Part shown: piece after piece, positions 19,640 to 63,378 of the stretch | How the letters are laid out: every line of letters starts with the position of its first letter | How positions within the stretch are numbered: the first letter of the stretch is position 1 | Assembly (NCBI RefSeq): GCF_018977255.1 | Contig: NW_024704771.1 | Location: 2,294,001-2,358,000 of the forward strand | Reading direction: 5' to 3' | Source: Callorhinchus milii | Lineage: Eukaryota | Length of the DNA: 64,000 bases | The notes under the pieces: generated by a model | Told to the model about the DNA's origin: nothing | What the model saw: only the letters and a program-made list of their open reading frames with translations | Database searches by the model: none | Position numbers and translations under genes: made by a program

Positions 19640-20159
19640 TTAACCTGTCACTGGGCAGATTGTCAGAGGCTCAGAATTATACCAGGGATTGAACAGAGGA
19701 TAAAGTTTCTCAGTGAAAGTTTGTGTGAAAGTGTGGAGATGAGACATGTTGTCAACGTTATAAAATGATATCTGTCCCTCTTCATAGTCCAGATAAACTC
19801 CGACCTTCCCGAGTCTCACTGTCAGGGGCAGGCGGGTGGGAGGTGAAGACAGAGCATCATAGCTCTTGCCCCTCAGCCTCACCCCCAGACCCCACCCTCT
19901 GCTGACCAAGTGATTCGTTGATTCTTGTTGACAGACTCTGTGGCCAATCCCATAATCCACCATGACTTGTTGCCCACCTGCACCTCCCAGTAATGTTTCC
20001 CTGATGTGAAGCCCTCAGATCCCAGGACAATGGGATACAAACTAAACCTCTTCGGGGAGTCAGGGAGCGACTGCTGTTTGTCTCCGAGTCTCACACTGGT
20101 CCGGTCCTCAGACAGGATGAGCAGGGGATGGGCTGTGTCAGGATCCAGAGTGACTGTAA
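19640..20159 (-). CDS. B30.2 exon of butyrophilin-like gene 1, frameshifted at the G run 19882-19886
   Basis: [33 protein letters not shown], then (frame change) [34 protein letters not shown]. Confidence 0.9.
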
Positions 20160-23100
20160 CTGGAGGGAGAATCAGACCATTAATGTCGGACACATTTACA
20201 ATTATAAATAAGATGATCTTCAGCGTCGTCACCGGGAGAGAAGCCTTTGTGTAAAACATTGACATCTCCCGAGAACAGAATCCAGCAGAAAGGCTGACAG
20301 TCTGTGTGTGTGTGTGTGTGTGAAGGGGGATGTGAGAATGTGTGTGTGGGTGGGGATGTGGGGGTGTGTGGAGGGGTTGAGTGTGTGTGGGGGAGGGGAT
20401 GTGATGTTGTGTGGGTGATGTGAAGTTGTGTGGGTGATGTGAGGGTGTGTGTGGGGGGATGTGAGGTTTTGTTGGCAGAGATGCAAGGATGTGTGTGGGG
20501 GCATGTGATGGTGTATGTGTTGGAGGTGTTGAGGGTGTTGCGGAGGTTTGAGTGTGTGTCTGTTGGGGCGATGTGAGCTTGTGTTTGGGGCATGTGAGGG
20601 TATGTGTGATGGGGGAGGATGTGATGGTGTGTGGGAGCTTGATGGTGTTTTGGGGATTGGTGGGATGTGAGCGGGAGATGTGGGTGTGGTGAGGGTATTT
20701 GTGGGGGTGTGTATGGGTGTGTATGAAGGTGTGTGGAGTGTTTGATGTTGTATGTGTGGGGATGTGAGGTTGTGAATGGGAGGGGGGGATGTGAATGTGT
20801 GAGAGGTTGTGTTTGTGAGGGTGTGTGGGAGGATATAAGGGTGTGTGTGAGGGAACTTGGAGGTATGAGTTTGAGTGCATATGAGAGTGTGTGGGGTGTA
20901 TGTGATGTTATATGTGTGGCGGATGTGAGGCTCTGAGTGGGATTGGGGATGTGAGGATATGTCGGGGAGGTGTGAGGATGTGTGAGGTGAGGATATGAAG
21001 GTGTGTGGGGGGAATGTGAGGGTGTGAGTGAGGCGGGTGATGAGCATGTGTGTATGTGGGTGAATGTGAGCGTGTGTGAGGTTTTGTATGTGGGGTGGAT
21101 GTGAGGTTGTGTGGGTTTGCGAGGGTGTGTGTAATGGTGTGTGGGGTGGGGGGGGTTGTGATTTGAGGGAGACTGTATGGGTGGGATGTGTGTAAGTGTG
21201 ACGCGGAGTGTGAGCGTGTGAGTTTGGGGTGATATGTGGGTGGTTGAGGGTGCGCCCGGGGATGTGAGGGTGTGTGTGAGGTAAATATGAATGTATGTGT
21301 TGGGGGGGGTGTGAGTGGGGGGAATGTGTTAAGGTGTGTGTGGGGGGAATGTGGGTGTGTGTGGGGGATGTGGGTGTGTGGGGGGATATGAGTGCGTGTG
21401 GGGGTGGAAATAGGTGTGTGTTTGGGGGGGATGTGAAGTTGCGTGTGGGGCGATGTGGGGAATGTGAGGCTGTGTGTGTGGAGGTGTGAGGGTGTGTGGA
21501 TGTGACAGTGTGTGCGGGTGATGTGAGGGTATGTGGGGGGTGATGTGAGGGCGTGTGTGTGAGGCTGGACGTGAGGCGGTATGTGTGGGAGGGATGTTGA
21601 GGGTTTTATGGTGGGGTTGAGTATGGGTGGGGGAGGGGATGTGATGTGTGGGGAACGTGAGGGTGTGTGGGGGAATGTGAGGGTGTCTGGTGGCGATGTG
21701 AGGGTGTGTGTGTATCGGGCAATGTGAAGCTGTGGGTGGGGGAGATGTGAGGGTGTGTGTGAGGGTCTGTGTGTGGGGTGGATGTGAGTTTGTGTGGGTG
21801 TGTGTGAGAGTGTTTGTAATGGTGTGGGGGGGGAGGTGATTTGAGGGAGACTGTGTGGGTGGGATGTGTGTGAGTGTGAGGCGGAGTGTGAGCCCGTGTG
21901 TTTGGGGTGATGTGTGGGTGTTTGTGTGGGGGGGTGTGTTTGCTTGTGTGGGGTTTGTGTGAGGATGTGTGTGTTAGTGAGTGTGAGGGTGTATGCTGTG
22001 TATGTTCGGGGATATGAGGATGTTTGTGGGGGATGGGCTGTGATGGTGTGTGTGAGGGGATGTAAGGGTTGTGTGAGGGGATGTGAGGTTATATGCGTGT
22101 GGGGGGATGTGTGCGTGTGGGGGATTTGTGCGTGTGGGGGGATGTGTGCGTGTGGGGGTTGTGTACATGTGGGGGGATGTGTGCGTGTGGGGGGATGTGT
22201 GCGTGTGGGGGGTTGTGCATGTGGAGGTGATGTGTGCATAGAGAGGTGATGTGTGTGAGGAGGGTTGATGTGTACGAGGGGATTTGATGTGTGCGAGGGG
22301 GATTGATGCGTGTGGGGGGGTTGATGTGTACGTGGGGGGGAATGTGTGCGCCGGGGGGAATGTGTGCGCCGGGGGGAATATATGTGTGAGGGACGTGGGT
22401 ATGAAAGTCTATTTTTTTGGGGGGGGGCAGGGTGATGTGACTGTGTATGGGGTGGTGGGGAGTCAGTGTGTTGGATGTTGGTGGTTCGGTCACTCAGACT
22501 CTTACCTGCACACCTGCGAATCCTTTTCAACACTGGAACCAAGAAGAAATAAGTGATCAGATCTTTGGCAGCTCCTAACCAAGTCACACTGCCTCCCTCC
22601 CTCTCCCTCACTCTCTCTAACTCACTCCCTCCGTCTCTCACTCCCTCTCTCACTCCCTCCGTCTCTCCTTTCCTCTGTCCCTCTCTCCTTCTCGCTCCCT
22701 CCATCTCACTCCTCTCACTCCCTCTCTCTCCCCCATCATCTCTCTCTCCCTCCTTGTCTCACTCCCTCCATCCCTCCTCTTCTCACACCCTCCTCCTCTT
22801 ATTCCCTCCTGCTATCATGCCCTCCCTCTCTCACGCCCTCCCTCTCACACCCTTCCTCTCTCAAGCCCTCCCTCTTTCTCTCCCTCTTTTTCTCCCTCCC
22901 TCCCTCCCTCCCTCATTGAAGCTCACTCATTTTTTTTCCCTTTTAATGTGTGTATGTTCACAAGCCAATGTTGTCTTCGGGAAGAGAAGGGAAAGTTCAA
23001 GATGTGAAATAGACCAATGGTTGGAGTTAAACAGCCTGTAATAATTCATGGAATAGAATCATTGAAATTTACAGCCCAGAAGGAGGCCATTCACCATCGA

Positions 23101-26100
23101 GTCTATATGGGCTCTCAGATCAAAGTGTTCATACAACAGCTGCCCTGCCCTACAACTAAACCCCTTCAAGCCTCTATCCCTCATGCACGTACTTATCTAC
23201 TTCTCTGTCTACTTCCCCTCTGTTCCACCATTGGAAATCATGTATACAGCCACTTCGCCCTTAAATTCTGGAATACTGTCACTCAATCCCGTTGCCTTGT
23301 CCCCTCTCTCCCCCTTTTCAAGTCCCAACTGAAAAGCTTCCTTTTCGATCGTGTTTACAGTCACCTCCCACCCAGCCCCCCCCCCGAAAAAAAGGCTCTT
23401 TATAATACACAATATAATAATAATCCTTGCATTTGATATCTGCCACTATTAAGCACTCTGAGACGTTATCCTGAAAGCTGGGTGCTGTATAAGTGCAAGT
23501 TGTTGTCCTATAATAATAGAGTTTTCTGGAGAGTGCAGTGAGTGGGTATTTTGTTAGCAAACAAATACAACAACAACAACAAGATTCCATTTATAAAGCG
23601 CCTTTCACGTCAGGAGGACGTCCCAAGGCGCTGCACAGTTGGGTCATGACCCGAGCAGGGGGGAAATGGTCAGGGGAGGGGAGGGAGCGAGGAGGGGGGA
23701 AATGGTCAGGGTGAGGGGAGGGAAGGGAGGGAGCGAGGAGGGGGCAGAGAGTCGAGAGGGGAGCTGAAGGCTCGGTCAAAGAGAAAGGTTTTGAGACCGG
23801 CCTTGAAGGAGGAAAGGGAGGAAGCGGCGAAGGCACTGGGGGATGGAGTTCCAGAGCCTGGGGGCTGAGAGGCTGAAGGCCCGACCACCGATGGTAGGGC
23901 GGTTGGGGCGGGGACGTGGAGCAGACCGGAGCCAGAGGAACGGAGGGTACGGGCAGGTAGGTAGGGGGATAGTAGGTTGGAGAGGTAGGAGGGAGCAAGG
24001 CCGTGAATGGCCTTGTAGGTGAGGATGAGGATCTTGAATTCGATCCTCTGGGGGATGGGGAGCAGTGGAGGCGAGCGAGGGTGGGAGTGATGTGGTCGCG
24101 GTGTCTGGTGCGGGACAGTACACGAGCTGCAGAGTTCTGAATGACCTGCAGTGTGGAGGGAGGGCCGGGAAGGCCGGCGAGGAGAGAGTTCCCATAGTCC
24201 AGCCTTGAGGTGACAAAGGCGTGAACCAGGGTTTCAGCCGCGTGAGGGGTGAGGTAATGCCGTAGTCTGGCGATGTTCCGGAGGTGATGGAAGGCGGTGC
24301 CAGTTGTGGTGCGGATGTGAGGGAGAAAGGACAGCTCAGGGTCGAACAAAACGCTGAGGTTCCTGACTGGCTTTGAGATGCACTTTTACTGCACCTCAAT
24401 GTCCTTATGTCTGTTTTGTGTGAAGCATGTGAATGAAAGATATCACATTTAAAATTGTTATTTTATTTTGATAACTTACCCACTCTCTTCTCAAGATCTA
24501 GAGGATACAAAACAGAACTGTTAGAAACTGATTTCTGAATCCAGTATAGTTTAATGGTCAGTCTACATGTTTACAACATTAACAGATGTTAAAGTGCAGC
24601 TCAGCACAATTATAGGAGGTTTGAATTACAATAAAATTTACATTTACACAGCACCTTCCACAGCGGGGGACATCCCAAAGCACTGACAATGCTGGGGTCT
24701 GAGCTGCAGGTGGGAGCCGGGGTGGAGGGTCAGCAGAGGGAGATGGGAATATTAACTAAAAAAGCAGAATAAATAGGTCATGAGATGGGCCTTGAACGAG
24801 GTGAGGGAGGGGCCGAGACAGAAGGATTCTTGGATTGAGTTGCAGAGAGTGGCGGCAGAGAGGCTGAAAGCCTGAGCTGCTGATGGTGGGGAGGATCGGG
24901 TGGTGACATGAAACCGGGGTCACTGAGTGAAGGGAGAGACCAATTGTTTTATAGAACTTACACATTCATACAGTAACAGTGTTGTGATGAGAGATGTTAC
25001 TGATGGGAACGTACCTTTGATCTCTCGATGCTGTTTTACACTGTAGCCGACCAGAACACTCAGCATCATTATGGCAAGTCCTAAGAGCAGTGAGGAAACC
25101 ACCAAACCCACTGGCACTTTGGGAAAGAACTCGTCTGTCAAGAAATGTAAATAGACATTTAAGTATATATTATGATGTCAAAACAATAAATATCTTTATT
25201 TACCCTCAAGTGACTGTATTACACACAATAGCTCAGTAGCTGTCACGGGCTTCACTCAAAGTGAAGTCCTGGTAGTGTATTGGATAAAACGCTCGCCTCG
25301 CATGTGAGAAGACACGGGTTAGATTCCCAGGCAGAGAGAAACATTAGACAAGTTTCCTTACTCCACATGCCTCTGTTTACTTAGCAGTTAAGTAGGAACC
25401 CGCTTGTTCATTGTTTGGAAGATCGCTTTCCAGGGCTAATAATCCCATCAAAAAATACAATATAATAATTGGGTCACTCATCCGTGACTGTTTGTGGGAC
25501 ACTGCTGTGTGCAATTGGCTGCCGTGTATCACCCACAAAATATACAGTCAATTCACTTAGAGTATAGTCTGTGAAGCTCTTTATGATGTTTCATTCAAAC
25601 ACGTGATAATGCACTGTATCAAATCCTACAATTATTATTATGTACTTTTCCTGGGCAGAGAATTGGGGTCTTGGAGCTGAAGTGGCACTAAAGGGATGTG
25701 GTTGTTAAGGGAATGTCAGAATAAAATCCATTCTTTGTGGCCGTCCCGTTAGTCCAGTCCCTGAGAGCCAGACTCCAAGGGTGAATGTATGGATAAGGAA
25801 AAGAAAAGGAACAAAGATGGAGCTTTGAGGAACCCCCTCTGTGAATATACTGGGCAGATGTGAAGCCATTGGTAAGATAAAGTGGAGATGCTGGGAGAGA
25901 CAGGCATGAAACCAGCAAAGTACAGAGGATGTGAGGTGAATCAGGGAGGAGAAGTGGACAAGTGTGAAAGGTGATAGAGCGATAGAGAAGGACAAAGAGA
26001 CACAGGGAGCCCTAGTCATCAACAGAGAGAACATCTGGTGTGACTTTGTCCAGGGCTCTCTTGGTGCTGTGGGCAGGGAGGAAGCCAGTTTGGAGAGAAT

Positions 26101-29100
26101 TTTACAGGAAATGATGGGAAAGGAAGGAATGAATCTTCAAGGCTACAACTCATCCCAGCACCTTGGAGAGGAAGGGCAGGTTGGAAATGGGGCAACGGCT
26201 AGAGAGACTGTAAGGAATTCAGTGAAAGTTTAAGTTGAAGAGCGTAAATGGCAGCATTTGTGAAAGAGAATTGCCATGCCAGAGGAAAGGAAACCATTCC
26301 TAATATCTATTTTATTTTAGTTTTCAAATGTGATTTCTGGAGGAACTTCTAACCTTCAATGTCAAGTAAATAGAAATTGGAGACCCCAAAGAGAACATTG
26401 GAACAAATGTAAAACAGAATCCCAACACATTCTTCCATAAAAATAGCAAATAGAGGGTAATCGGGAACAAGATAAATCCATAGGGATACAAAGTGAATTG
26501 AAGAGAAGGCTGAACAGGAGATAGTGATGTATTAAATGACCACATTTGTTGGTAATCAAACAGACAGTCACTAACAATGTGCTGTCCAATATAACAGTGA
26601 TGACAGAGCAATACCTGGCAACTCATGAACCCGAGTGAATGGAAAATTCATGTAAACCATAAATAGAAGCAAATAATTGGAAGATGACCTCAATGTATAT
26701 GTCTGCCTTAAACCTGACCTTCAGAATGCTGAACCTGTGTCCTCTTGTCCTGCTGCCTCCATGTGGATGTCCTATAATTATGTCCTATTCCCCAGCTCAG
26801 GTCCATTTCCCTGACAGCCCAGCACCTTCGCACATCCTCCCAATTTGAAAGATGTTTTACAAATGTCTTTTGTTGTTGTCCTGTAGCTTCTCAGCTCTTA
26901 ACCTGTAGTCTTCCCTTCACTGTGAGGTGGATCAGGCAACTTTTGCCTCTTCTGAAGCAATGGTGGCTGTGAGTTACGAAGTGTTGATTAATTCACAAGA
27001 TAATCAGCAGTTTGAATAGGTTAGCAGGAAGGATGGGTGAGCTGGAGTACTGAAATCAGAATTGATTTCAGTTTGTAATGAGAATATTCATTGGCTTCAA
27101 AACCCTCCATGGCCCTGCTTCTCCTGATCTTTGTGATAAGCTAACTCTGTTTCTGCCCCAGTTCTGTAGAATTCCATCCACAGACCCTCCATTCGCTCAG
27201 TCACTTGTCTCCTTCAAGATCCACCTCTTTCACCGAGCTTTCATTCATTCATTCCTACTGCCACCTACCCTGCCCTCCATCCCTCCTGACCCCAAACTTC
27301 AGATAGGGTCCAACATGGGGTGGACCTTTGTATAGTGTGTCTCACACTGGGACATCCTCCTGGCATGAAAGGCACTTTACAAATGTAATTTGTTGTTCTC
27401 AAACCACATGCTGAGTTTGGTATTTTGAAAGGATGAACTCAAGTGGACCGTATCATCCAGACTGATCGAGTTTTCACTTCATGTGCTATACAAATCTGCA
27501 TCATATTTAACAAACAATCATTAATATTTCCTTCTTGTTCATTTACTGACCTGAGATTTGGAGTTTTGCTTCTTGTTCATTTTCTGAATTGTGAATCAGA
27601 CACCTGATCTTGTTGGTTGAATAGATTATTTCTATTTGGCTTTTAACACTGTAGAGACCTTTAGAATCCTCTCTGACAGTCCAATTACTGAGTGTTGTTA
27701 AGTTGTTTCCCTGATCATCAAACCATAGAACCTCTGGTGCTGGGAACCATCCACTGGATTCACACCGCAGCCTCACACCATCACTGTGCTCATCAACGTG
27801 AATCCAAAGCTGACTGCCAAGCCCTGGAAGAGACAGGAGACGTGAATCAGACAATATTTATACCCGGGACATTAAAGACCAGTAACTTTACTGAAAACAC
27901 GTTTACAACATTCTGAATAAATTGACACTAATGAATTGTTCTTGTCAATATAAATTATTGCTTTTGGACATAACATAAACAAATAATGAAAATTTGTATA
28001 CAGAGATTACATTAAATAAAATGAATTGTAAATGTTACTGACCTATAACATTCAACTTTATCAATACATCTTGATATGATCCGGCGTACTCAACAAAGCA
28101 TGTGTACTCTCCGTTATCTGACACCCGCACATCTCCCAGTCTGAGAGACACGTTGCCATTGATAAACTCCTTTACAAACAGTTGTGTTCTATGTCTGTAG
28201 GCTTCATCCTGTTTCCTCAGTTGATGTCGTCTCTCCTTGTATAAGTGCACAGGGGAATCGTAACTTGTCCTGAACCATCTCACCTCCACACCCTCTCGTG
28301 GCAGGTCTGTGGAACACTTACAGTCCAGGACAACATCTGAACCAGCAATGGCTGGGACAGGGAGGGCCGGGCCACTGACTGTGAATCTCTCTGTTCAATA
28401 ACAAACAATGGATAGTTAGGATTTTCAGTCACACTGACTCGGACAAACTCTGCCAATAGACAGTCACTGTCCTTGCAATAATCCTTGCACTTGATATATC
28501 TTATAGATAATTATTTGGGGAGGACAAGTTTTCTCAGCTATGGGGAGAACGTGGGAGTGGGATTGATTTGGATAGCTGCTTTGAAAAGTGGGCAGGAACA
28601 CAATGGGTCAAAGGTCCTCCTGTGTTGTATAATTCTATGATTCTCTGAGGATTTTTTTCAATTTCAATGGATAGAGTTAGGATTTTCAGTCCCACTGGCT
28701 CAGACAAACTTGTCAACAGACGTCACTTAGATATCAATTTGTTTCTGATATAAAGTAGAAGTCACACTTTTACAGCTGCAATAGAACTGACATTGGCAGT
28801 AAATTCATCTGGATCTTATAAATAATAATAATAATCCTTGCATTTGATATAGTACCTTATCATGTCTTCTCAAAAGCGCTTCGCAGAATATATTGTAGAG
28901 GGAATTAACTATATTTCATGGGTAAAAAGTGGTTGCCAATTGCACAGAGTGGTATCCCACAAGCAATCGTGGATTGAGTGACCAATTTATTATTTATGTT
29001 ATTTTAAGGAATTATTACCCCGGAAACCCGATCCATCAATTGACTAACAACCAGGTTCCTACTTAGGGGAGCACAGCTTTGCCTGGTTCCAATCCTACTT

Positions 29101-31423
29101 TTCCCACCGTTTGCACTTCATTTTCATCAACAGCTTCACCTCTAGTCCCCGCGCTGTCATGTGTGGCATCACTCACAGCCCTGTCCTTGGTCCCCTCCTC
29201 TTCAATCTATACATACTCCCTCTCGGTGATGTCATCCTCAGGCAAAGGATCAATTTTCACGTGTATGTGGATGAAATCCAACTCTATCTCACCACCTCCA
29301 CCATTGACTTACAGGACCGTTGATGTCCTGGCTAATGATCTGTCTGACATCAAGTCCTGGACAAGAGCCAATTTCCTCCAGCTCAATGGAAGACAGAGGC
29401 TCTCTTGCTTGGCTCCTGCAGCAGTTCCTCACTTCATCTAATAATAATAAATAATCCTTGCATTTGATATAGCGCTTTTCACGTCGGGAGGACGTCCCAA
29501 AGCGCTTCACAGAATAGACTGTAAAGTGAATTGACTGTATATTTGTGGGCGAACGCGGCAGCCAATTGCGCACAGCAATGTCCCACAAACAGTCGTAGAT
29601 TGAAAATGACCAATTTATTATTGCTTTGTTTTGGAGGGATTATTATTAGGTGTGTGGAGTAAGGAAACTTGCCCAAGGTTTCGCCCTCTGCCTGGAATTG
29701 AACTCAGGTCTCTCACTTGCAAAGCGAGTGCTCTAACCACTGAGCTACAGGACTCCACATCTGTTGAACATTATCACTATTCATGGCTGATTCACATCTC
29801 GGCTTGACTATGCCAACTGCCTGCTCACCGGACTTCCCAGCTCTTCCCTCCACAAGCTACAGATTATTCAGAACTCTGCAGCTTGTGTCCTCTCCCACAC
29901 CAGCCTCTGGGAATTTATCATCCCAGTTCTTGCCCAGCTTCACTGGCACCCCATCCCTCAGAGAATCAAGTACAAAATCCTCGTTCTCATCTTTAAGTCC
30001 TTCCAGAGTCTTGCTCCCCCCTACCTTTCTGACCACCAAATCCTATATCAGCCTGTCGGCTCCCTCCGCTCAGTGAACACTGGCCTGCTTCAGGTCGCCC
30101 GCACTTCCAGCACCACCATTGCCAATCAGGCATTCAGCATCTCTGCCCCCACACTCTGGAATTTTGTCCAACAATCCCTCCACCTCATACCCTCTCTTGC
30201 CTCCTTCAAGTGTCCCTTCTAAAGATCTTGCTCCTCAATTGTATCTTTGGGCACCTTCCCACCCACATCCCCTGCCGTCCACCTCTCCTGACCCGACTCC
30301 CAGCTCGGGTCTAAAAACCCCTGACTGCCTAGCGCTCTGGGACATTTTTCCGATGTGAGGGGCACTGTACAAGTGTAATTTGTTTTTGTTATTGTTGTTG
30401 CATTGTCAGAAGTGCTGTCCTTCTGATGAGCCATTAATTTGAGGTCCTGTCTGCCTGTTTATGTGTCAGTAAACATCCAGTGGCTCTACTCGAAAAGAGA
30501 AGGGAGTTTGCTACGTTCACCTGCACTTCACAGTGAGAAATGCTTTGAAATGTTTTGATTCTATATTCTCACAAGACTCTGTGAAGAAATGTTTGCTGAT
30601 CTCACTTATAACCAGGTTAGCTACAATTTCAGATTTTATGTTCCTTTGTTTTCCAAGAAGGAAGTGTTGTCCACTATTTAGCTTGACAATTCACTTCACT
30701 ATTTAAGCATCTCAATCAGATTCCCCTTCAACCTAATCAGCTCTGAGGAATATAACCGATGTCTAACCAGCCTCTCAACACAGTTAAAACATTTCATCCC
30801 AGGTATTAATCTCATGAATCATTTTAAGATTAGTGGAACTCCCTTCTCACAGAATCATACAATAACACAGCACAGAAGGACATTCGGCCCAGCGAGTCCA
30901 TGCCGGCTCTTTGAAAGAGCTAATGTCTTAAAATCTCAGAGCTTTTAAAAAAAGCAATTTGGTCACTCAATCCAAAACTGTTTATGGGGCACTACTGTGC
31001 AAAATTGGCTGCCACAAATCTGCCCACAAAATTTTCCACAATTCTGTGAAATGCTTTGAGACGTCTCAGCAATGAGATGAGGCACTATATCAAATGCAAA
31101 TATGATTGTTATATAAATTCCTCACTTTTATATTCCTCTTTATAAAGACCATCATTAGTTTCACTAATTACTTTATCAACCCAAAAACAAGATTTCAGTG
31201 ATTTATGTATTTGGAACCTAAATGCCTTTGCTCATCTCCTGGAACATTAGCAGCTCTCAGTGTGTGAATCACACTCACTCCCAACCGCCGCCTTCAGCAG
31301 CTCTCCCTTTACCTTCAGCAATTTAACACCAACAGAAATCAAACAGATTCAATGTGTTTCCTTACCAGTCAGTGAGAGGGGAAGCACAAGCCATAGGACC
31401 TGAATACCGTGTTTCCAGCTCAT
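19640..31423 (-). CDS. Butyrophilin-like gene 1 (leader, IgV, IgC, TM, B30.2); 1-nt frameshift in B30.2
   Basis: Phase-1 exons with GT-AG boundaries: 31366-31423 (leader [19 protein letters not shown]), 28043-28390, 27551-27823, 25015-25134, 24480-24497 (18 nt), 22506-22532 (27 nt), 19640-20159. The total of 1364 nt is one base short of an open 454-aa frame. Confidence 0.88.
20280..22480 (+). repeat. About 2.2 kb GT/G-rich low-complexity intronic repeat, followed by a CT-rich tract (22590-22930)
   Basis: gatgtgagggtgtgtgtgggggg-type units, with an internal duplication of about 110 bp (21130-21235 vs 21810-21915). Confidence 0.95.
22506..22532 (-). CDS. 27-nt exon of butyrophilin-like gene 1
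   Basis: ttccag|TGTTGAAAAGGATTCGCAGGTGTGCAG|gtaaga, reading VLKRIRRCA. Confidence 0.8.
23568..24375 (-). mobile_element. Young L2 LINE 3' end
   Basis: Closely similar to 15403-16150. ORF reads [24 protein letters not shown]. Confidence 0.92.
24480..24497 (-). CDS. 18-nt micro-exon of butyrophilin-like gene 1
   Basis: cctctag|ATCTTGAGAAGAGAGTGG|gtaagt, reading DLEKRV. Homologous to 44531-44548. Confidence 0.75.
25015..25134 (-). CDS. Transmembrane exon of butyrophilin-like gene 1
   Basis: [40 protein letters not shown], 120 bp, AG/GT boundaries. Confidence 0.88.
25261..25640 (+). mobile_element. tRNA-headed SINE, older long subfamily
   Basis: gtgaagtcctggtag..ggttagattcccaggcag head and caagtttccttactccac core. 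Confidence 0.75.
25680..26290 (-). mobile_element. Degraded L2 fragment
   Basis: GVPQSSIF-like RT remnant in the - frames. Confidence 0.6.
27551..27823 (-). CDS. IgC exon of butyrophilin-like gene 1
   Basis: [50 protein letters not shown], the typical BTN IgC motif C.S.GWFP.PEV.W. Confidence 0.92.
28043..28390 (-). CDS. IgV exon of butyrophilin-like gene 1 (348 bp)
   Basis: [64 protein letters not shown], a BTN/MOG-type V-set domain. Confidence 0.93.
29050..30400 (+). mobile_element. Degraded L2 interrupted by a SINE
   Basis: [24 protein letters not shown], with a tail at about 30340-30390. Confidence 0.75.
29439..29758 (-). mobile_element. Full-length young tRNA-Ala-like SINE with an L2-type tail and (ATT)n
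   Basis: Head GTGGAGTCCTGTAGCTCAGTGGTTAGAGCACTCGCTTTGCAAG..GAGTTCAATTCC. Near-identical to 48392-48713 and 52748-53071. Confidence 0.92.
31366..31423 (-). CDS. Leader (signal peptide) exon of butyrophilin-like gene 1
   Basis: ATG at 31423, 58 nt, donor ctg|gtaagg. Identical to 50223-50280. Confidence 0.85.
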
Positions 31424-34400: not shown

Positions 34401-34544
34401 TATGAAGTATCCATCGTATTCTGCAACTACATAGCGACAGACGAAAGCACAAACTGTTCAGAGAGATACATCTATACTCTGCAACAAATGTATGGCTTTC
34501 TTCTGGTAGTCGTGGGAGCCGTGTCCTCCCATGTGGGACAGACA

Positions 34545-44900: not shown

Positions 44901-47900
44901 TTTTTTTCCTCACCTCCCCTGTGTTGCTTTTAACAACTATTTTAAATCTTTGTTCTCGGGTTACCGACCCACCCTCTAGTGGAAATAATTTCTCCCTGTT
45001 CACCTTATCGAATCCCCTCATAATATTGAAAACCTCTATTATGTCACCTCTAAACCTTCTCGCTCCAAGGAGAATAATCCTAGCTTCTCTAGCCTTTGCT
45101 GATAACTGATGTCCTTCAATCCTTGTACCATCCCAGTAAATCTCCTTTGCACCCTCTCCATTGCCTTGACATCCTTCCTAAAGTGTGGTACCCAGAACTG
45201 AACACAGTACTCCAGGCCTAACCAGTGTTTTATAAAGGTTCATCATAACTTCCTGACTTCTGTATTCTATGCCCCTATGTATAAAGCTTAATATTCCGTA
45301 TACTTTTTGAACAGCTTTATCTTCCTATCCTGTTACCTTCAAAGAGTTACTTATATGAACCCCCTGATCTCTCTGTTCCTTCACTCCATTTAAGATTGTA
45401 CCATCAGCTTATATTGCCTCTCCTCATTCTTCCTCCCAAAATGCATCACTACATATTTATCCACATTAAACTTCATCTGGCATGTGTCTGCTCACCAGTC
45501 TGTTTATCTCCTCTTGCAGTCACTGTTTATTGCTTTTCCTGGCTTAGTGTCATCTGCAAACTTGGAAATTGTACTCTCTATACTGAATTCCAGGTTATTT
45601 ATATAGATCAAAAACAGCAGTGGTCCCAATACTGTCCCCTGGAGGACACCACTGCACACTTCCTTCTAGTCAGAAAAACAACCGTTCACCATCATTCTCT
45701 GCTTTCTGTCCACCAGTTAGATCTGCATCCATGCTGCCACTGTCCCTTTAATATCGTGGGCTTCTATTTTGCTTACAAGTCTCTTAAATTGCCTTTTTAT
45801 CAAACACCTTTTGAAAATCCATATAAACTACATCAACTGCCCTATCTTCAACCACCTTCTCTGTTACTTCATCAAAAAACCGTATCAGGTTTGTTAGACA
45901 CAATGTGCCTTTAACAAATTGACTGATGGCTATCCTTTATTAACCCATATTTTTCTAAGTGAAAATTTATTTCTCCCAAATTATAGTCTCTAGAAGTTTC
46001 GCCACTACTGACGTTAGGCTGACTGACCTGTAGTTCCCGGGTTTACCCTTCTGCCCCTTCTTTTACAGGGGACTAATATTTGGCAACACCTCGGTGTCCA
46101 AGAAGAATTGAAAGATTGTGGCCAGAGCCTCCGCTATTCCAATACTTACTTCCCTCAGTAATCTAGGATGCATCCCATCTGGATCATCTAACTTGGTCCC
46201 AAATTGTCCCCACCCTAACTTTGACTAATCTTTAACTCTTTATTTGTTTACAAAATACCTTAGGGTTACCTTTGATGTTACCCACTAACCTTTGTTCATA
46301 TAATCTCTTTGCTCCTCTTATTTCCTTTTGCAATTCTCCTCTGTACTTTCTATATTCTATTCGATTATCTTCTGTATTTTGTTCATGATATTTATCATCA
46401 GGCTCCTTTTTCTGTTTTACGTTAATCCCAATCTCCTTAGTCATCCAGGGAGGTTTGGATGCCCTAACTTTCCCATTTTTGGGAATGTATTTGTTCTACC
46501 TCTGAACCAGCTCTTCATGAAGATTTCCCATTGTCCTTTAGCTGATTTATCTGCCGATCTTTCTTTCCAGTCCACCTTGGCTAAGTCCCTCTTTAACTCA
46601 CTGAAATTAGCCTCTTCCAGTTGAGTATCTTCACCTTTGATTGTTCCTTGTTCCTTTCCATAAGTGCTCTAAACCTAATGATGCTGTGATCACTGTTGTC
46701 CAGATGCTTTCCTACCGAATCCTGGTCCACTTGCTCCACTTCATTCCCCAGAACTAGAGCCAGTATTAATATCTTCCTTGTTGGGCTGGAAACATACTGA
46801 TCCAGAATGTTATGCTGCACACATTTCAGGAATCCTTCCACCTCCTTGCCCTTTACCCTCTTATTGTGCCAGTCTACGTTAGTATAATTGAAGTCCCCCA
46901 TTATTACTACTCTACTGCTTTTTCATCTTTCTGAAATCTGCTTGCAGATTTACTCATCTATCCCCTTCCCACTATTTGGTGGTCTATAGTATACACAATA
47001 CAATTACACAAATTTTGCACTGTAAGTTTGTAATCACATTTCTTTGAAAAATACTTTGTTATTGGTTTTCAACAAATTAGCTGTGATATCTGAAGTAAGA
47101 ATTTCTCTGAAAAATGCTGCTTACTTCAGAATGATTTCTATCATGTCTTACAATCTCTGGCACCAAACTAATACTATGAGAATTGCCTTCACATAGTTAT
47201 CCTAAAATAAATATCAGTATAACAGCTGTGTATTATAGATCACCGAATGGTTCCCACATTCATCTAAAACTACTGCACATTTTATTCATAAATCTTGCAT
47301 GAAGTATATTGCATTTCACATGAAACCACATGAGTTTTATCATTTGTGATCTTTTTGTTATCAGTACATACCTTTAATCTCTCTGTGCTGCTTTATATTG
47401 TAAGGCAAAACAAAACTCAGAGCCACTGTGACAAGTCCTAAAAGCACTGAGGAAACCACCAAATTCACTGGCACTTTGGGAAAGAACTCATCTGTCAAGA
47501 AATGTAAATAGATGTTCATTGATAATGATAATAATAATCTACACATTTGATATTACTTTGGTGTTACATCTCTAAGTGCTTTACAGAGTAAAGTGCAGGA
47601 CTCTATTTTGTGGGCAAAACATGGCAGCCAGTTGCGCACAGCAGTGTCACACAAACAGTCATGGATTGAGTAACCAAATTTTCGGGGGGACAGATTATTA
47701 CTCCCAGAAAACGATCCTCCAATTGACCAACAATCGTATTCCTACTTAATGATAGGTAAGCAGAGGCATTTGTGTGGAGTAAGGAAACTTGCCTAAGGTT
47801 TCTTCATGCCTGGGAATTGAACCCAGGTCCTCCTGCTTGTGAGGCCACTACACTAAGGAAATCCTTTCATTCTGATATCAAACAACAAATCGCCTTCAAT

Positions 47901-50280
47901 TCATTACTCAACACTCTTTGCTGAGATCTTGTAAGTTACAGAAATCTGTATCATATTTATCAGACTATCATTAGTAATTCAGTGTAAATACTGACCTGAT
48001 ATATGCAGTTTCCCTTCTTGTTCATTTTCTTCATTGTGAATTAGACACCTGATCTTGTTCGTTGAATGGATTATTTCTATTTGGCTTTTAACACTGTAGA
48101 GACCTTTAGAATCCTCTCTGACCGTCCAGTTACTGAACGTTGTTAAGTTGTTTCCCTGATCATCCAACCATAGAACCTCTGGTGCTGGGAACCATCCACT
48201 GGATTCACACAGCAGCCTCACACCATCACTGTGCTGCCCATCAACGTGAATCCAAGGCTGACTGCCAAGGCCTGGAAGAGACAGGAGTCGTGAATCAGAC
48301 AATATTTATCCCCAGGATATTACAGTGCAGTAACTTTAATGAAAACACATTGACAACATTCTGAATAGATGATATTAAATTACATTCATTTATAATAATA
48401 ATAAACCTTGCATTTCATATAGCGCTTTTCACGTCGGGAGGACGTCCCAAAGCGCTTCACAGAACACACTGTAAAGTGCATTGACTGTATATTTGTGGGC
48501 GAACGCGGCAGCCAATTGCACACAGCAATGTCCCACAAACAGTCATAGATTGAAAATGACCAATTTATTATTGCTTTTGGTTTTGGAGGGATTATTATTA
48601 GGCTCTGTGTGGAGTAAGGAAACTTGCCCAAGGTTTCGCCCTCTGCCTGGAATTGAACTCAGGTCTCTCACTTGCAAAACGAGTGCTCTAACCACTGAGC
48701 TACAGGACTCCACGGCACTTTATGTTATTAAAACACATGTAGTTTCACCCACAAAATACACAGACAACTACACAGTGAATTCACTTCACAGTACATTCTG
48801 TGAAGCACTTTAAGATGTCTCAAAGATGCGATAAGGCGTCATATCAATTGGAAAGATTATTATCATTATCATTACTTTGGAATGTAATTATCATTAAAGT
48901 GGAGTCCTGTAGCTCAGTGGTTAGAGCACTCGCCTTGGAAGCGAGACACCTGGGTTCAATTCCAGGCAGAGGGCGAAACCTTGGGCAAGTTTCCTTACTC
49001 CACACAGAGCCTAATAATAATCCCTAAAACAAAACAATAATAAATTGATAATTTTCATTCAATGACAGTTTGTGGGACACTGCAATGCTCAATTGACTGC
49101 CGCGTTTCGTCCACAAATATACGGTCAATTCACTTTACATCATGTTCTGTGAAGCGCTTTGAGCTGTCGAGAAGACATGAAAAGCACTATATTAAATGCA
49201 AGATTGTTTACAGACTTTTCTTTGTTTATAATGTATTTCAAACACAGAATAACATAACGATTGTATTTACACACCATTACCCCCCAAAAAAATGAGTTGT
49301 AAACATTTCAAACCTATAACTTTCAACTCCATCACTGCCTCTTCATACCATCCAGCGTAGTCAATGAAACATCTGTAGGTGCCATTATCTGAGCCCCATA
49401 CATCTTTGAGTTTGAGAGATACATTGCCATGAATGAATTCCTTTTTAAAAAGTTCTGTTCTGTGTTTGTAGGCTTCTTCCTGCTCGCCTGTCTGATCGCG
49501 CCCCTCACTGTATAAGTGCACAAGGGAGTCAAATCTTGTCCTGAACCATCTCACCTCCACACCCTCCAGGGGAAGGTCTGTGGAACACTTACAGTCCAGC
49601 ACAACATCCGAACCAGCAATGGCTGGGACTGGGAGGGCCGGGCCACTGACTGTGAATCTCTCTGTTTAATTACAAAAGAAAGGGGAAAAAAGTTAGGATT
49701 TGCAGAATGGCACTGGTACAACTTCCTGTAACTCAGTGGTTAGAGCGCTCGCCTCGCAAGAGAGAGGACCTGGGTTTGATTCCCATGCAGAGCGGTATGT
49801 TCGGCAAGTTTCCTTACTCGACACGCCTCTGGTTACCTTGCAGTGAATAGGAACTTGGTTGTTAGTCAATTGGCTGACCGCATTTCCGAGGGTAATAATC
49901 CCTCCAATAAATAAATAAATGAAATTGTAATAATTTAATCACTCACACCATGACTGTTTTGGGAATTGGCTGCCTCATTCCAACCACAAAATATACAGTC
50001 AACTTACTTTGTAGTATATTCTGTGAAATGCTTTGAGACATCTTAAAGATGTTATAAGGCGTTATATCAAATGCAGGATTTATTATAAATATTAAGGTAG
50101 AACATCAGCAGCTGTCAGTGCGTGAATTTCGCTCACTCCCAGCCACGGTCTTCAGCAGCTCCCCCTTTACCTTCAGCAATTTAACACCAACAGAAATCAA
50201 AGACATAAATGTGTTTCCTTACCAGTCAGTGAGAGGGGAAGCACAAGCCATAGGACCTGAATACCGTGTTTCCAGCTCAT
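38355..50280 (-). CDS. Butyrophilin-like gene 2, intact, 465 aa (leader, IgV, IgC, TM, B30.2)
   Basis: Phase-1 exons 50223-50280, 49314-49661 (348), 47996-48271 (276), 47372-47491 (120), 44531-44548 (18), 40608-40634 (27), 38355-38905 (551). The total of 1398 nt is open to the stop codon, and all introns are GT-AG. Confidence 0.92.
40608..40634 (-). CDS. 27-nt exon of butyrophilin-like gene 2
   Basis: cttttcag|AGATGAAAAGGCTTTCCCGTTGTGCAG|gtaatt, reading EMKRLSRCA. Confidence 0.8.
40705..41170 (+). mobile_element. Old SINE (DeuSINE/SacSINE-like)
   Basis: tggctcagt head, gggtgttaaagatcctttggcactatttgaa core, and L2-like tail. Confidence 0.65.
41825..44385 (-). mobile_element. CR1 LINE, 5'-truncated (part of endonuclease plus RT), degraded
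   Basis: [38 protein letters not shown] and VYRPPNS motifs. Tail aggagtaggccattcagccc with (cataa)n. Confidence 0.9.
44531..44548 (-). CDS. 18-nt micro-exon of butyrophilin-like gene 2
   Basis: ccaatag|ATCTCCAGAAAAGACTGG|gtaagt, reading DLQKRL. Confidence 0.78.
44675..47010 (-). mobile_element. CR1 LINE, 5'-truncated and internally deleted
   Basis: [31 protein letters not shown], with a tail at 44675-44720. Confidence 0.88.
47372..47491 (-). CDS. Transmembrane exon of butyrophilin-like gene 2
   Basis: [40 protein letters not shown]. Confidence 0.88.
47530..47860 (-). mobile_element. tRNA-headed SINE, older long subfamily
   Basis: gtggagtaaggaaacttgcc core and reverse head. Confidence 0.7.
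47996..48271 (-). CDS. IgC exon of butyrophilin-like gene 2
   Basis: [42 protein letters not shown]. Confidence 0.92.
48392..48713 (-). mobile_element. Full-length young tRNA-Ala-like SINE
   Basis: Near-identical to 29439-29758. Confidence 0.92.
48899..49205 (+). mobile_element. Full-length tRNA-Ala-like SINE, head-to-head with the previous copy
   Basis: gtggagtcctgtagctcagtggttagagcactcgcc... Confidence 0.88.
49314..49661 (-). CDS. IgV exon of butyrophilin-like gene 2 (348 bp)
   Basis: [58 protein letters not shown]. Confidence 0.93.
49721..50090 (+). mobile_element. tRNA-headed SINE, older long subfamily
   Basis: cctgtaactcagtggttagagcgctcgcc head with the long core. Confidence 0.75.
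50223..50280 (-). CDS. Leader exon of butyrophilin-like gene 2
   Basis: [22 protein letters not shown] at 50280, donor gtaagg. Confidence 0.85.
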
Positions 50281-53071: not shown

Positions 53072-53074
53072 GAT

Positions 53075-55680: not shown

Positions 55681-58600
55681 TTATACTGTCATCGCACAGA
55701 TTGTCAGTGGCTTGGAGTTTTTCCCATCAACATTAAACCAGGGACTGAAGTAAGGATAAAGTTTCTCAGTGAAAGTGTGGGTGAAAGTGTGGAGATGAGA
55801 CATGTTATCAGCATTGTAAAATGTCACCTGTCCCCCCTCATAGTCGAGGAAAATTCCGATCTTCCTGGGTCTCTCGCTCAGAGGGCAGGGAGTAGGAGGT
55901 GACGTACCAGCCTCATATTCATTCCCATTTCTCATAGTCATTCTCCAGTATCCAGCCTCTGGTGCCAGTATGATTACCCCCTTTCTATTGATGGACTCCC
56001 TGGCCACTCCCACATCCCAGTCAGTCTTGTTGCCCACCTGTACCTCCCAATAATGTCTCCCTGATGTGAAGCCCTCAGATCCCAGGACACTGACACAGGA
56101 ATCAAACCTCTCTGGGGTGTCAGGGAGCAACTTCTGTTGGGCCCCCAGTCTTACACTTTTCAGGTCCTCAGACAGGATGAGCCGGGGATGGGCTGTGTCA
56201 GGATCCAGAGTGACTGTAACTGGAATCAAAAACACACATAATCCTAATCCAACACTGATTTACATTTTTAAACATAGATTTATTCATAGATTCATAGAAT
56301 GTTATGACACAGAAGGAGGCCAGTTGGCCCACCGAGTCTGTGCCGGTTCTTTGACAGAGCATCACTTTCACTAACCCCAATTACCAGCTTTCTCCCCATA
56401 ACTCTGCAAACCCGTCTTCTCCAGATACCTATCCAGTTCTCTCTTAAAAGCTGTTATCGAATCGGACTCCACTGCCCTTTCGGGCAGATCATTCCAAATT
56501 CGAACAACTCGCTGAGTGAAAAAATTTCTTCTAACCTCCCCTCTGCTTCTTTTGGTAGATATCTTAAGACTGTAACCATGAGTCACAGTTACACCTAACA
56601 ACGGAAACAGCTTTTCTCTATCTCGCCTGTCGAAACCTTTCATGATCTTGAAGACCTCAATCAGGTCCCCGTGTAACCTTCTCTGCTCTAAAGGGAAAAG
56701 TCCTAACTTCTCCACTGTCCACATAGCTAAGGTTCCCCATTCCTGGTATCATTCTTGTGATCTCCTCTGCACCCTTTCCAGTGCCTTAATGTCCTTCCTG
56801 AGGTAAGGTGCCCAGAACTGGACGCAGTACTCCAGCTGAGGCCTAACCAGTGTTTTGTATAGATTAACCATAACCCCTACTCTTATACTCTAAGCCCCTA
56901 CTAATGAAGCTCAGTACACCAAATGCCATTTTTACTGCCTTATCTACCTGCCCCGCTACCTTTAATGATTCGCTTACTACAACACCCAGATCTCTCTGTA
57001 CGCTCACCCCCCTTAAGATTGAGCTACCAAGTCTATATTGCCTCCTATCATTTTTCCTACCTAAGTGTATCACCTCACACTTACCCATATTGAAATCCAT
57101 CTGCCAATGTCAGCCCATTCCACCATTCTGTGTATGTCTGCTTGCAGTTAGTACAGTCCTCCTCACTATTTACTACCCGACCTAACTTTGTATCATTTGC
57201 AAACTTGGAAATAGTGCTCTCTGTGCCCAAGTCCAGATCATTAATATATATTAGAAAGAGCAGTGGTCCCAATACCGATCCCTGGGGGACACCGCTGCAC
57301 ACCTCCTTCCATTTCGAGAAGCACCCATTAACCACCAACCTCTTTCTGTCACTGTCACTGAGACAGTTCTTAATCCAAACTGCCACTTAATACCGTGGGC
57401 CTCTAATTTTTGTATTAATCTCTTATGCGGTACTGTGTCAAAAGCCTTTTTGAAATCCATGTAAATAACGTCCACCGCATTTCCCTCATCAACCCTCGCA
57501 GTTGTTAGAATTTACACTTTTTATATAATGTTAGAATCATAATAGATGTTGTGAATGGGTTAATTTTAAGTTAAGTGTGGGCAGTCATGGGATAGGACAC
57601 ATCTGGTTTTCTCTGTTTTTGAAAGAATAACATACAGGGGCAGGGGGTCGCCTCTTATCAGTAAATGACAACAAGCCCACAGAGCTAACGGTCCAAGGTA
57701 CCAGTCGACACAGGATCTCGACTGAGCAATAAGTCGCTAGATTCTGACAGGGCCAACCGACAGAAGGCAACCCCCAAGAATAGCAATTAATGAGCAAGTT
57801 GCTTAAACTAGAGGGCCTTGGTACCATCCCGGGATACTGATAAGAAATAACCAGTCACTTAAAAGGAATGTACTAATGATCCCACACCACAAAATAATGA
57901 GCACCAGATACAGTGCTAAACTGATCAATCCTCTATCTTAGACAATTAGATCAGATAACGGGGGTCTTAAGGACAATGTATATGTGTGCTGAGGCACGTA
58001 CACCCCATGAGATGTTCACGTGAACCCAGCATGATCTTGGCCAGGTGACCTAATGTCCGCACCATGATTGGATGGACACAAGCTTAAGACACTGTGCCAG
58101 ACCAAGATCAGTGCGCGCCCAGGACAGTACCCACCGTGGATGGAAGACTGAGAGCTAGAAGACAGAAGTAGACGACCACGAGGAGGAATTATGCGGTAGT
58201 ATTGTTCTGTTAGTAAATTGATTGATTGTGCTTACTTGCCCACGCCCATCGGGAACTTGGACGGATCCTGGAGTTTAATAAACACTACTCTGGTTGCAAA
58301 CAGTGATTGTGTTTGATTGGAACTCGAAAAGAAGATTTTATTTTCTAACACAGTCACCTCTTCAAAAAATTCTATTAGATTTGTTAGGCAAGATTTGTCT
58401 TTAACAATCCATGGTGGCGGTCTCTAATTACCTCATGTTCCTCTAAGTAGAGATTTATTTTGTCCTGGATTACAGTCTCCAGTAGCTTTCCTATTACCGA
58501 AGTTAGGCTGACTGGCCTGTAATGTCCGGGCTTGTCTTTCTGCCCCTTTTTGTAGAGTGGGGTAACATTAGCCACTCTCCAGTCTCTTGGCACCACTCCT

Positions 58601-61600: not shown

Positions 61601-63378
61601 TGGGCATATTCTCCATTGTTGGAGGCTCATCTGTAATCATTAGAATATACAGAAACAGACCATTTGGCCCAACTGGCTATGCCGGTGTTTATGCTCCACA
61701 TGAGCCTCCTCATCCCCTTCCTCAACTAAGCCTTCAAGCATAACCTTCTTTTCCTTTCTCCCTCATGTACATATCTAGCTTTTCCTTAAATACATATATG
61801 CTATTTGCCTCAACTCCTTGCGGTAGCATGTTCCACATTCCCACTTCTCTCTGCGTGAAGAAATTTCTTCTAACTTCCTTTTTTGATCCATTTGAAACCA
61901 TTTTATATTGATTGCTTATATTGTCAGCTTTGACTATGTAATTCCACGTTCCCAAATAAGGCTGGAACCCACATTTCTGACTCAAGAGCTGAGAGTTCTC
62001 CCTCTGCACCAGGCTGACACACGCTAACTCAAAGCTCAATCTGTGTCTGTTCAGATGAAGTTGAAAGATTCTAACTTTCTATTTGAAAAGAGAAGGGACT
62101 AAACCGATACACGTACAGCCTCTGGAACAAGAGAATGGGCTACTCTTCACACACAGCACTGGCCCCCGAATTCTTCCATCTCTAAAAAACCTCACCGTCT
62201 GGAACACCATGCCACAATCCCTTTGCCTCGTTCCCTCCTTTGCCACCTTAAGACCCTCCTCTTCAAACATGCCTTCAGCCAGCATCGTACCTCTACCCAC
62301 TCTGCCCTCCACCCTCCCTAATCCCAACCGCCCCCTTCCCCATCCTCCCACCAATGCTCGTATCCTAATCCCTGACTGTTCAGCACCTTGGGACGTCTTC
62401 CCGATGTGAAAGACGCGCTATAAATGTAATTTTTTTGTTGTTGTTCAGTGCCTTGGGACATCTTCCCGACATGAAAGGCACTTTATAAATGTAATTTTGT
62501 ATTTTGTTGTATAATTATATGAAACTTAATCTGCATTTTGTTTCCAGTCATTTTTATTGATTTCCAATATAGGAACCTTATATCTCGCTTCTTTCATTTT
62601 TCAAACTAAGCATTTGGAAATCTGCTTCCAATTCTGAAATCTGGGATGATCAACAAGAATGACCCATGTAAAGCTCATATTTTTAAATTCATTTTCACTT
62701 AGTTATACAATGTTGAATAGAATCATAGAATTATACAGCACAGAAGGAGGCCATGAAATTATTCCCACTCCACCACTCTCTCCCCATAACCCTGAAAACT
62801 TGTCCTCCCCAAATAATTATCAACTTCTCTCTTAAAAGTTGTTATGGAATTGGACTGTCGATCAGGGAGGGGGCGGAGGAACGGGGAAGAAAGGGAGGAG
62901 TCAAATCATGATTGATTGACAACCTGGAGCCGCTTGTGGTTGGGTGGAGCCTATCCATTCACAAGCAGCTCTAGGCTGTCAATCACCTCGGAGCTGCTGC
63001 TGATTGGTTCACTTCCTGTCCAATGGACATGGCAATGGGAGGGAGGAGGGGCCAATGGTGTTCCTCTGCTGGGTGGGAAGAAGTAAGGTAACTTCGGTTA
63101 ACCTCAGGCACCTCATAAGATGGACAAAATGGCCAGCCCCAGTTTAAGCCGCTTCCACTGTATTTAATTGTCTACACCTTTACCAACTAAGCTACCTGGG
63201 GCCTTTGGATAATTTTTATCATGTCACTTTATTCCGATTTATGGATCGTATTTATGAATTTTAAAATTGATGAGATAATTTTGTAAGTTTAGGGAGTAAG
63301 AAGCTTTTTGCAGTTATTTCCACTGTGAGCCATTAATACAGGGACTCTTACCTGCACAAATAAGCATCCATTCCCACT
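55681..63378 (-). CDS. Third B30.2 gene, partial: last two exons (63352-63378 and 55681-56219), probably butyrophilin-like gene 3; upstream exons lie beyond the window
   Basis: 27-nt exon ttcttcag|EWEWMLICA|gtaaga, then an intact 539-nt exon [44 protein letters not shown]. The B30.2 is closest to gene 2. A TRIM identity cannot be excluded without the upstream exons. Confidence 0.8.
57503..58350 (+). mobile_element. Solo LTR (848 bp) inserted into the CR1
   Basis: Termini TGTTAGAA...TTCTAACA form an 8-bp inverted repeat (TG..CA). CAGT is duplicated on both sides (57499-57502 and 58351-58354). AATAAA at 58277-58282. The CR1 sequence resumes seamlessly. Confidence 0.88.
60062..61096 (-). pseudogene. 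CR1 ORF1 (zinc-finger/leucine-zipper N-terminus plus SGNH/GDSL esterase-like domain) with one in-frame TGA
   Basis: [21 protein letters not shown], then [15 protein letters not shown], then [26 protein letters not shown]. ORFs 60731-61096 and 60062-60643 are in one frame, with a single stop at 60731-60733. Confidence 0.88.
62150..62450 (+). mobile_element. L2 3' UTR and tail
   Basis: cagcaccttgggacgtcttcccgatgtgaaagacgcgctataaatg. Confidence 0.7.
62914..62984 (+). other. 71-nt long hairpin inside a cluster of promoter-like motifs
   Basis: The arms gattgacaacctggagccgcttgtg and cacaagcagctctaggctgtcaatc are complementary at 22 of 25 positions. The inner stem continues with G-U pairs to a 3-nt loop. 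Confidence 0.7.

Follow-up and report, generated by a model that had tools for sequence, protein, structure and literature searches.

Butyrophilin genes set among TRIM genes on a scaffold of the chimaera Callorhinchus milii

Butyrophilins have been found in all jawed vertebrates, Callorhinchus milii included, and their duplications are class-specific and lineage-specific (Marenco et al. 2026, PMC12841164). The family has been dated to Gnathostomata (PMC13262535), and the joining of immunoglobulin (Ig) and SPRY domains has been described as a jawed-vertebrate innovation by domain shuffling that is tied to gamma-delta T cells (PMC11788884). Squamates keep butyrophilins though they are without gamma-delta T-cell receptors (TCRs) (PMC12841164), and a gamma-delta role is therefore weakened as a necessary link. 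A butyrophilin expansion has been noted in rockfish (10.1101/2025.02.19.638963), and B30.2 exons are known to have been exchanged between finTRIM and NLR genes in zebrafish (PMC2657112). Here we consider a stretch of 64,000 nucleotides of DNA from C. milii, the elephant shark, called the window throughout, which carries several butyrophilin genes and a TRIM pseudogene and corresponds to approximately 2,294,001-2,358,000 of scaffold MU249860.1 (GCA_018977255.1; 4,116,489 bp). Very probably, the region, of some 45 kb, is one part of a large cluster in which butyrophilin and TRIM genes are mixed, and we infer the intact butyrophilin products to be type I membrane proteins.

The original prediction, made from the letters of the window alone, had left undecided whether this array had been described, and had named earlier annotation and study as a known family as grounds for its refutation; these largely apply. 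The butyrophilin family of C. milii is already annotated, in RefSeq and in Ensembl, with dozens of paralogs, and already published: the genes of the window have entries of their own (P0013; XP_007883214.1; P0001, P0002 and P0038), and the family as a whole is covered by PMC12841164. What is new in this analysis is the exon-wise mosaicism of the genes and the intermingling of butyrophilin B30.2 domains with those of neighbouring TRIM genes. The feature itself is real and had for the most part been described correctly, down to its attribution to a cartilaginous fish, which the best protein matches and complete identity to the C. milii locus bear out. The DNA is of vertebrate type, with a CpG observed/expected ratio of 0.40 and one N, at 12328, and positions 45681-64000 are 100% identical, over 18,320 nt, to the locus of the RefSeq protein P0013.

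The minus strand of the window holds two seven-exon butyrophilin-type genes (genes 1 and 2) and, of a third (gene 3), only the two exons at its end. We defined the exons by using annotated paralogs as guides, by comparing the DNA of the copies with one another and by searching for exon boundaries. Two complete genes and the tail of a third had been proposed on this strand; the exon sets are indeed there, but the B30.2 exon of gene 1 is frameshifted. The terminal exons of the three genes are spaced 18.7 and 17.3 kb apart, matching the roughly 17-19 kb expected. Each gene follows the order leader, variable-type Ig domain (IgV), constant-type Ig domain (IgC), transmembrane segment, two mini-exons and B30.2, with one exon per module, and for all three genes, within the window, the exon borders are AG/GT and every one of them is phase 1. 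The exons are as follows.

50223..50280, minus strand, gene 2 leader exon, with the ATG at 50280
49314..49661, minus strand, gene 2 IgV exon (Pfam V-set at 49267-49602, minus strand)
47996..48271, minus strand, gene 2 IgC exon (C2-set_3, E 7e-23)
47372..47491, minus strand, gene 2 transmembrane exon, from the exon model
44531..44548, minus strand, gene 2 mini-exon of 18 nt encoding DLQKRL, found because the DNA here is 82% identical to that around the gene 1 exon
40608..40634, minus strand, gene 2 mini-exon of 27 nt encoding EMKRLSRCA, from alignment to the exons of genes 1 and 3
38355..38905, minus strand, gene 2 terminal B30.2 exon, intact (Pfam PRY and SPRY, exon model)
31366..31423, minus strand, gene 1 leader exon, with the ATG at 31423 and a phase 1 donor GT
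28043..28390, minus strand, gene 1 IgV exon of 348 nt, 100% identical to P0051
27551..27823, minus strand, gene 1 IgC exon of 273 nt, butyrophilin-type C2-set_3
25015..25134, minus strand, gene 1 transmembrane exon, from the exon model
24480..24497, minus strand, gene 1 juxtamembrane mini-exon of 18 nt encoding DLEKRV, from the exon model
22506..22532, minus strand, gene 1 juxtamembrane mini-exon of 27 nt encoding VLKRIRRCA, from the exon model
19640..20159, minus strand, gene 1 terminal B30.2 (PRY/SPRY) exon, with a 1-nt deletion in a G run and a TGA
63352..63378, minus strand, gene 3 mini-exon of 27 nt encoding EWEWMLICA, from the exon model, with the upstream exons beyond the window
55681..56219, minus strand, gene 3 terminal B30.2 exon, intact, 100% identical to RefSeq P0013

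Pfam bears out every domain that had been named in proposing a butyrophilin-family architecture. PRY and SPRY are matched at 38355-38933 and 55681-56235 on the minus strand and at 9086-9796 on the plus strand (E 1e-22 to 1e-29), and the butyrophilin-type IgC (PF22705) at 27543-27854 and 47979-48302 on the minus strand (E 1e-20 to 1e-23). The Cys/Trp core of the Ig ectodomain is conserved, and a hydrophobic transmembrane stretch of 21-23 residues is found in genes 1 and 2, with a shorter one in gene 3. When spliced, the seven exons of gene 2 stay open in frame throughout and give a protein of exactly the 465 residues that had been predicted. The best matches in a protein search with the joined gene 2 exons are C. 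milii proteins named “butyrophilin subfamily 1 member A1-like”; dozens of C. milii paralogs are 50-73% identical to the query, shark proteins 36-50%, and those of turtles, a caecilian and ray-finned fishes approximately 40-46%. Gene 3 is annotated under the same name (RefSeq P0013), and its coding sequence runs to about window coordinate 71715, past the window end; position 63378, at which the original prediction stopped, is the start of its 27-nt exon.

When scored against named families, the ectodomains are nearer to butyrophilins and butyrophilin-like proteins than to other members of the B7 family, judging by bit score. BTN1A1 scores 139.9 bits, BTNL3 138.4, BTN2A1 137.9 and BTN3A 118-125, against MOG at 92, B7-H3 (2-Ig) at 78.9, VTCN1 at 66, PD-L1 at 54 and ICOS ligand at 47; a butyrophilin rather than another B7 ectodomain is thus what was predicted and what is found (138-140 bits versus 79 for the best other B7 protein, B7-H3). 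The B30.2 domain matches pyrin and TRIM21 as closely as it matches butyrophilins, as is expected of a B30.2 domain. The AlphaFold model of gene 3 (mean predicted local distance difference test score 88.5) has a signal helix, Ig strands at 31-136 and 142-228, a helix at 239-271 and the B30.2 domain. Foldseek matched this whole chain only to the full-length cryo-electron microscopy (cryo-EM) chains of BTN2A1, BTN3A1, BTN3A2 and BTN3A3 (E 1e-45 to 1e-39), with template modelling (TM) scores of 0.86-0.93 for the ectodomain and of 0.92-0.96 for the B30.2 domain against those of BTN3A1 and TRIM21.

The whole-chain likeness is thus to human BTN2A1 and BTN3A1/A2/A3, which have the same order of signal peptide, IgV, IgC, transmembrane segment, juxtamembrane helix and B30.2, with one exon per domain; the gene 3 model aligns to full-length BTN2A1 and BTN3A cryo-EM chains over approximately 480 columns at 32-36% identity, and the IgC of the array matches a Pfam family, PF22705, that was built on BTN3A2. 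Unlike human BTN2A1 and BTN3A, the C. milii genes form a clade of their own and have a juxtamembrane region of 15 residues encoded by two mini-exons, and unlike the human butyrophilins of the extended major histocompatibility complex (MHC), those of C. milii do not share a chromosome with MHC class I (PMC12841164). A similar picture emerges for BTN1A1 and BTNL3/BTNL8, which give the top ectodomain scores (140 and 138 bits), with a TM score of 0.93 for bovine BTN1A1 (4hh8). However, the sole mammalian BTN1A1 in our ectodomain tree lies within the tetrapod clade, and a role in milk fat cannot apply here. More generally, none of the named mammalian subfamilies (BTN1A1, BTN2, BTN3 or BTNL) came out as orthologous in this tree of 96 sequences, since all C. 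milii sequences form one clade apart from those of tetrapods, and on sequence grounds “BTN1A1-like” is a best-hit name and nothing more. MOG consists of an IgV only, and ERMAP of an IgV and a B30.2 domain with no IgC. Both, together with chicken BG, have a related IgV (92 bits for MOG); BG has a single IgV and a long heptad-repeat tail, with no IgC and no B30.2 (PMC8813856).

All 35 C. milii sequences in the ectodomain tree fall into a single clade (Shimodaira-Hasegawa-like approximate likelihood ratio test, SH-aLRT, 99), separate from elasmobranch, tetrapod and ray-finned fish sequences, and the expansion is therefore lineage-specific, as the original prediction had proposed. The family has grown in the chimaera lineage by tandem and segmental duplication. 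For instance, window positions 1-34352, comprising the region upstream of the TRIM pseudogene, that pseudogene and gene 1, have a recent, collinear duplicate (L002, at MU249860.1:2,128,552-2,158,926) approximately 150 kb away, to which they are 92-99%, mostly 95-97%, identical. The L002 copy holds an intact butyrophilin gene (P0010/P0121) and a TRIM paralog with a RefSeq model (P0123), and the window copy of the duplicated unit has a lesion in each of both genes; a further locus, L001, is a more distant paralog. We considered P0010 as the product of gene 1 and rejected it, its locus being this separate duplicate. Expansions comparable to the chimaera one, with species- or class-specific clades of many paralogs, are seen in rockfish, turtles, Scleropages and sharks. 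Unlike these, the holocephalan case is interleaved with TRIM genes of the zinc-binding protein A33-like and nuclear factor 7 (NF7)-like types, of which there are many on the 4.1-Mb scaffold; RefSeq entries on MU249860.1 number at least eight for butyrophilins and at least nine for TRIM proteins, isoforms included.

The exons of the three genes do not share one history of divergence. Genes 1 and 2 are 73% identical in IgV, 89% in IgC and 61-65% in B30.2, compared to 75%, 44% and 75% for genes 2 and 3, and the B30.2 domains of genes 1 and 3 are 64% identical. Between genes 1 and 2 the synonymous divergence (dS) of IgC is 0.18, versus 0.41-0.53 elsewhere (Fisher p = 0.004), and the DNA of the IgC exon with approximately 80 nt of flanking intron (27492-27922 versus 47942-48370) is 89% identical, compared to 77-80% for the IgV and B30.2 exons. 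On these comparisons, the IgC exons of genes 1 and 2 appear to have been homogenised by gene conversion. The B30.2 exons also connect the genes to their TRIM neighbours: the gene 1 B30.2 is closer to that of the TRIM pseudogene (72% identity) than to that of gene 2 or gene 3, and in the tree the C. milii butyrophilin B30.2 domains are intermingled with those of the linked A33-like and NF7-like TRIM genes, with sharks giving a similar picture. A single clade of C. milii butyrophilin B30.2 domains is rejected (log-likelihood difference 142; approximately unbiased (AU) test, p = 1e-5). These trees suggest repeated exchange of B30.2 exons between the linked TRIM and butyrophilin families. There is a precedent in the finTRIM and NLR genes of zebrafish (PMC2657112), where a B30.2 exon is likewise common to two immune gene families in one lineage. 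Here, by contrast, the partners are butyrophilin and TRIM genes that lie interleaved along the DNA, and exchange seems to have recurred both in the chimaera and in sharks.

The TRIM gene that had been predicted beside the array is recognisable on the plus strand from its RING, B-box, coiled-coil and B30.2 exons, as in other A33-like and NF7-like TRIM genes, but unlike those it is a pseudogene, with its RING out of frame, a lost Cys and a stop. Its exons are as follows.

6263..6678, plus strand, TRIM pseudogene exon 1, RING and B-box (RING ATG at 6263; B-box 6454-6678)
7024-7122 and 7415-7654, plus strand, TRIM pseudogene coiled-coil exons, from comparison with P0123
8342..8458, plus strand, TRIM pseudogene exon interrupted by an in-frame stop (8357-8359) at a codon that is Trp in the paralog P0123
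9227..9796, plus strand, TRIM pseudogene B30.2 exon, PRY and SPRY, 72% identical to the B30.2 of gene 1 and 61% to that of gene 2

An intact RING with its eight ligands in one frame was not found, for the frame ends at 6451-6453 and the CPEC holding the last Cys pair lies in another frame. In the B-box (Pfam E 1.5e-5), relatives have LFCETD and the window gene LFGETD, so that a Gly replaces a Cys that binds zinc. The TRIM_CC match is weak (E 0.004; 17.4 bits compared to a Pfam cutoff of 30 bits), and the coiled-coil exons rest on the comparison with P0123. This C. milii protein, named “zinc-binding protein A33-like”, is 83% identical to the joined coiled-coil and B30.2 exons of the window gene. 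The RefSeq model of P0123, the nearest TRIM paralog, is likewise without a RING, and the RING lesion is therefore older than the duplication; the nonsense codon at 8357-8359 is specific to the window copy. In this assembly the window TRIM is a decayed A33-like pseudogene. Between it and gene 1 lies a fragment of HSP70 (11769-12167, minus strand; Pfam profile positions 396-459, E 5e-11), probably a pseudogene scrap, with SINE-like sequence alongside and the N at 12328 close by; the fragment is too small to bear on MHC linkage.

The lesion of gene 1 is a single one. Its B30.2 exon has five G residues at 19886-19882 where the paralogs L001 and L002 have six, and this 1-nt deletion brings on a premature TGA at 19881-19879, after the residues EGGVWG. 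The ectodomain of gene 1 is that of an older RefSeq model, XP_007883214.1 (P0051), which uses an alternative terminal exon near 22972 on the minus strand, ending in DNIGL and a stop, for a total of 277 residues and no B30.2. A product of this kind, with ectodomain and transmembrane segment and no B30.2, resembles BTN3A2. The model fits either a homopolymer error or a real lesion in gene 1.

Repeats lie within and between these genes. The last two introns of gene 1 (20325-22380 and 22592-22914) contain approximately 2 kb of G/T-rich minisatellites whose units measure 12-160 nt, together with a CT-rich array; these repeats yield a GC skew of 0.78 and long, spurious minus-strand open reading frames rich in His, Thr and Pro. 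A B30.2-like scrap at 19500-19414 on the minus strand (E 0.04) lies inside a G/T minisatellite and was rejected as a chance match. The long introns between the transmembrane and B30.2 exons of genes 2 and 3 contain sense-strand fragments of long interspersed nuclear elements (LINEs), at 42000-47000 and 56371-61100 on the minus strand, with endonuclease, reverse transcriptase and a first open reading frame of the GDSL-esterase type. Additionally, a repeat of approximately 320 bp occurs four times (29439-29758, 48385-48713, 48899-49208 and 52748-53071; 87-98% mutual identity), with further copies in loci L001-L003. Its heads are tRNA-like, three resembling tRNA-Ala and one tRNA-Pro, and from its sequence it is a young tRNA-derived family of short interspersed nuclear elements (SINEs).

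Several points weigh against reading the region as a slice of a working butyrophilin cluster with exchanged exons. The canonical gene 2 protein of 465 residues was absent from every database searched. The Ensembl/UniProt models of gene 2 (P0001, P0002 and P0038) have LINE-derived exons spliced in and the transmembrane exon skipped; for instance, P0002 includes 46665-46462 and skips that exon. RefSeq has a different coding sequence at this place, which starts from an ATG at window position 50835 (minus strand), 555 nt upstream of the gene 2 start, and continues through gene 2 to give a product of 909 residues that has no Pfam match on record. The lesion of gene 1 falls within a homopolymer and could stem from an error of assembly. 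The trees come from “quick” searches with SH-aLRT support only, and the B30.2 grouping subjected to the AU test was named after the tree had been seen. Pairwise dN/dS ratios of nonsynonymous to synonymous change (Nei-Gojobori, per domain, among gene 1, gene 2 and the paralogs L001 and L002) are 0.3-0.9, with none clearly above 1, and the paralogs vary on average no more in their IgV (0.82 bits) than in their IgC (0.85) or B30.2 (0.87). Neither dN/dS nor variability therefore points specifically to a ligand face under diversification. The sole value above 1, for IgC of gene 1 versus L002, rests on 7 versus 1 changes, and we rejected it as a sign of positive selection.

What the array does can be approached from its mammalian homologues, which make a function as a gamma-delta TCR ligand plausible. 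Judging from their homologues BTN2A1, BTN3A1 and BTNL3/8, genes 2 and 3 would encode type I membrane proteins that show an IgV face to a lymphocyte receptor, the leading candidate partner being a germline-encoded part of a gamma-delta TCR V domain; their cytosolic B30.2 would bind a molecule inside the cell and might control the ectodomain from there. In the strongest form of this idea, the array would supply germline-encoded ligands whose IgV domains select or activate gamma-delta T cells, in parallel with mammalian BTNL3/8, Btnl1/6, Skint1 and BTN2A1/BTN3A1, which we regard as possible rather than probable. The whole chain has the fold of BTN2A1 and BTN3A chains that were solved with a gamma-delta TCR, neighbouring divergent paralogs resemble, by analogy only, the mammalian genes for paired heteromers, and the origin of both butyrophilins and gamma-delta TCRs is placed in jawed vertebrates (PMC12841164, PMC13262535, PMC11788884). 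Across 27 distinct C. milii ectodomains, IgV varies most at positions after strand C' (ectodomain residues 52-60) and in strands F-G (95-116), on the CFG side. This is the face that BTN2A1 and BTNL3 use, and the hot spots are compatible with a ligand face, without singling one out. Such a role is countered by the even variability and the dN/dS ratios given above, by the lack of orthology in the ectodomain tree to any mammalian subfamily that regulates gamma-delta cells, and by the squamates, whose butyrophilins point to other partners (PMC12841164).

It is also conceivable, if unlikely, that the B30.2 domain is the working end, the proteins being membrane-anchored relatives of TRIM sensors that detect an intracellular pathogen or metabolite, with the Ig part only anchoring or dimerising them. 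The B30.2 exons held in common with the linked A33-like and NF7-like TRIM genes would fit, as would the precedent of finTRIM and NLR exon exchange (PMC2657112) and the fact that B30.2 scores against pyrin and TRIM21 equal those against butyrophilins. Between genes 1 and 2 the B30.2 is the fastest-evolving domain (dN 0.25, dN/dS 0.6), and its variable positions fall in patches. However, the Ig ectodomain is well conserved, with canonical Cys and Trp residues and a butyrophilin-specific IgC, and the Ig part is therefore under constraint of its own. Quite unlikely is that the window copies are decaying, functionless by-products of birth and death, with only other members of the cluster functional. 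Gene 1 is frameshifted, the TRIM has three lesions, and gene 2 has both the missing database entry and large introns full of sense-strand LINE fragments that gene predictors splice in. Against this, gene 2 has seven and gene 3 two clean exons, with frames, splice sites and structural residues kept, gene 3 is an accepted RefSeq protein, and dN/dS below 1 indicates constraint. The boldest proposal, and one to which we give little chance, would make inside-out butyrophilin signalling older than mammals, with B30.2 sensor exons swapped time and again between interleaved TRIM and butyrophilin genes of cartilaginous fish, such that one co-evolving module for intracellular recognition serves both a cytosolic E3 ligase and a membrane Ig protein reporting to gamma-delta T cells; its exon-exchange half has direct phylogenetic support, and its gamma-delta half is conjecture.

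Whichever of these roles applies, we read the region as part of a large mixed butyrophilin and TRIM cluster, and it places the full butyrophilin architecture, the TRIM-B30.2 neighbourhood and a lineage-wise expansion in a chimaera. That TRIM and butyrophilin genes share B30.2 exons is a modest finding about their evolution, and the intact genes 2 and 3 are ready-made constructs for testing whether non-mammalian butyrophilins engage gamma-delta TCRs.

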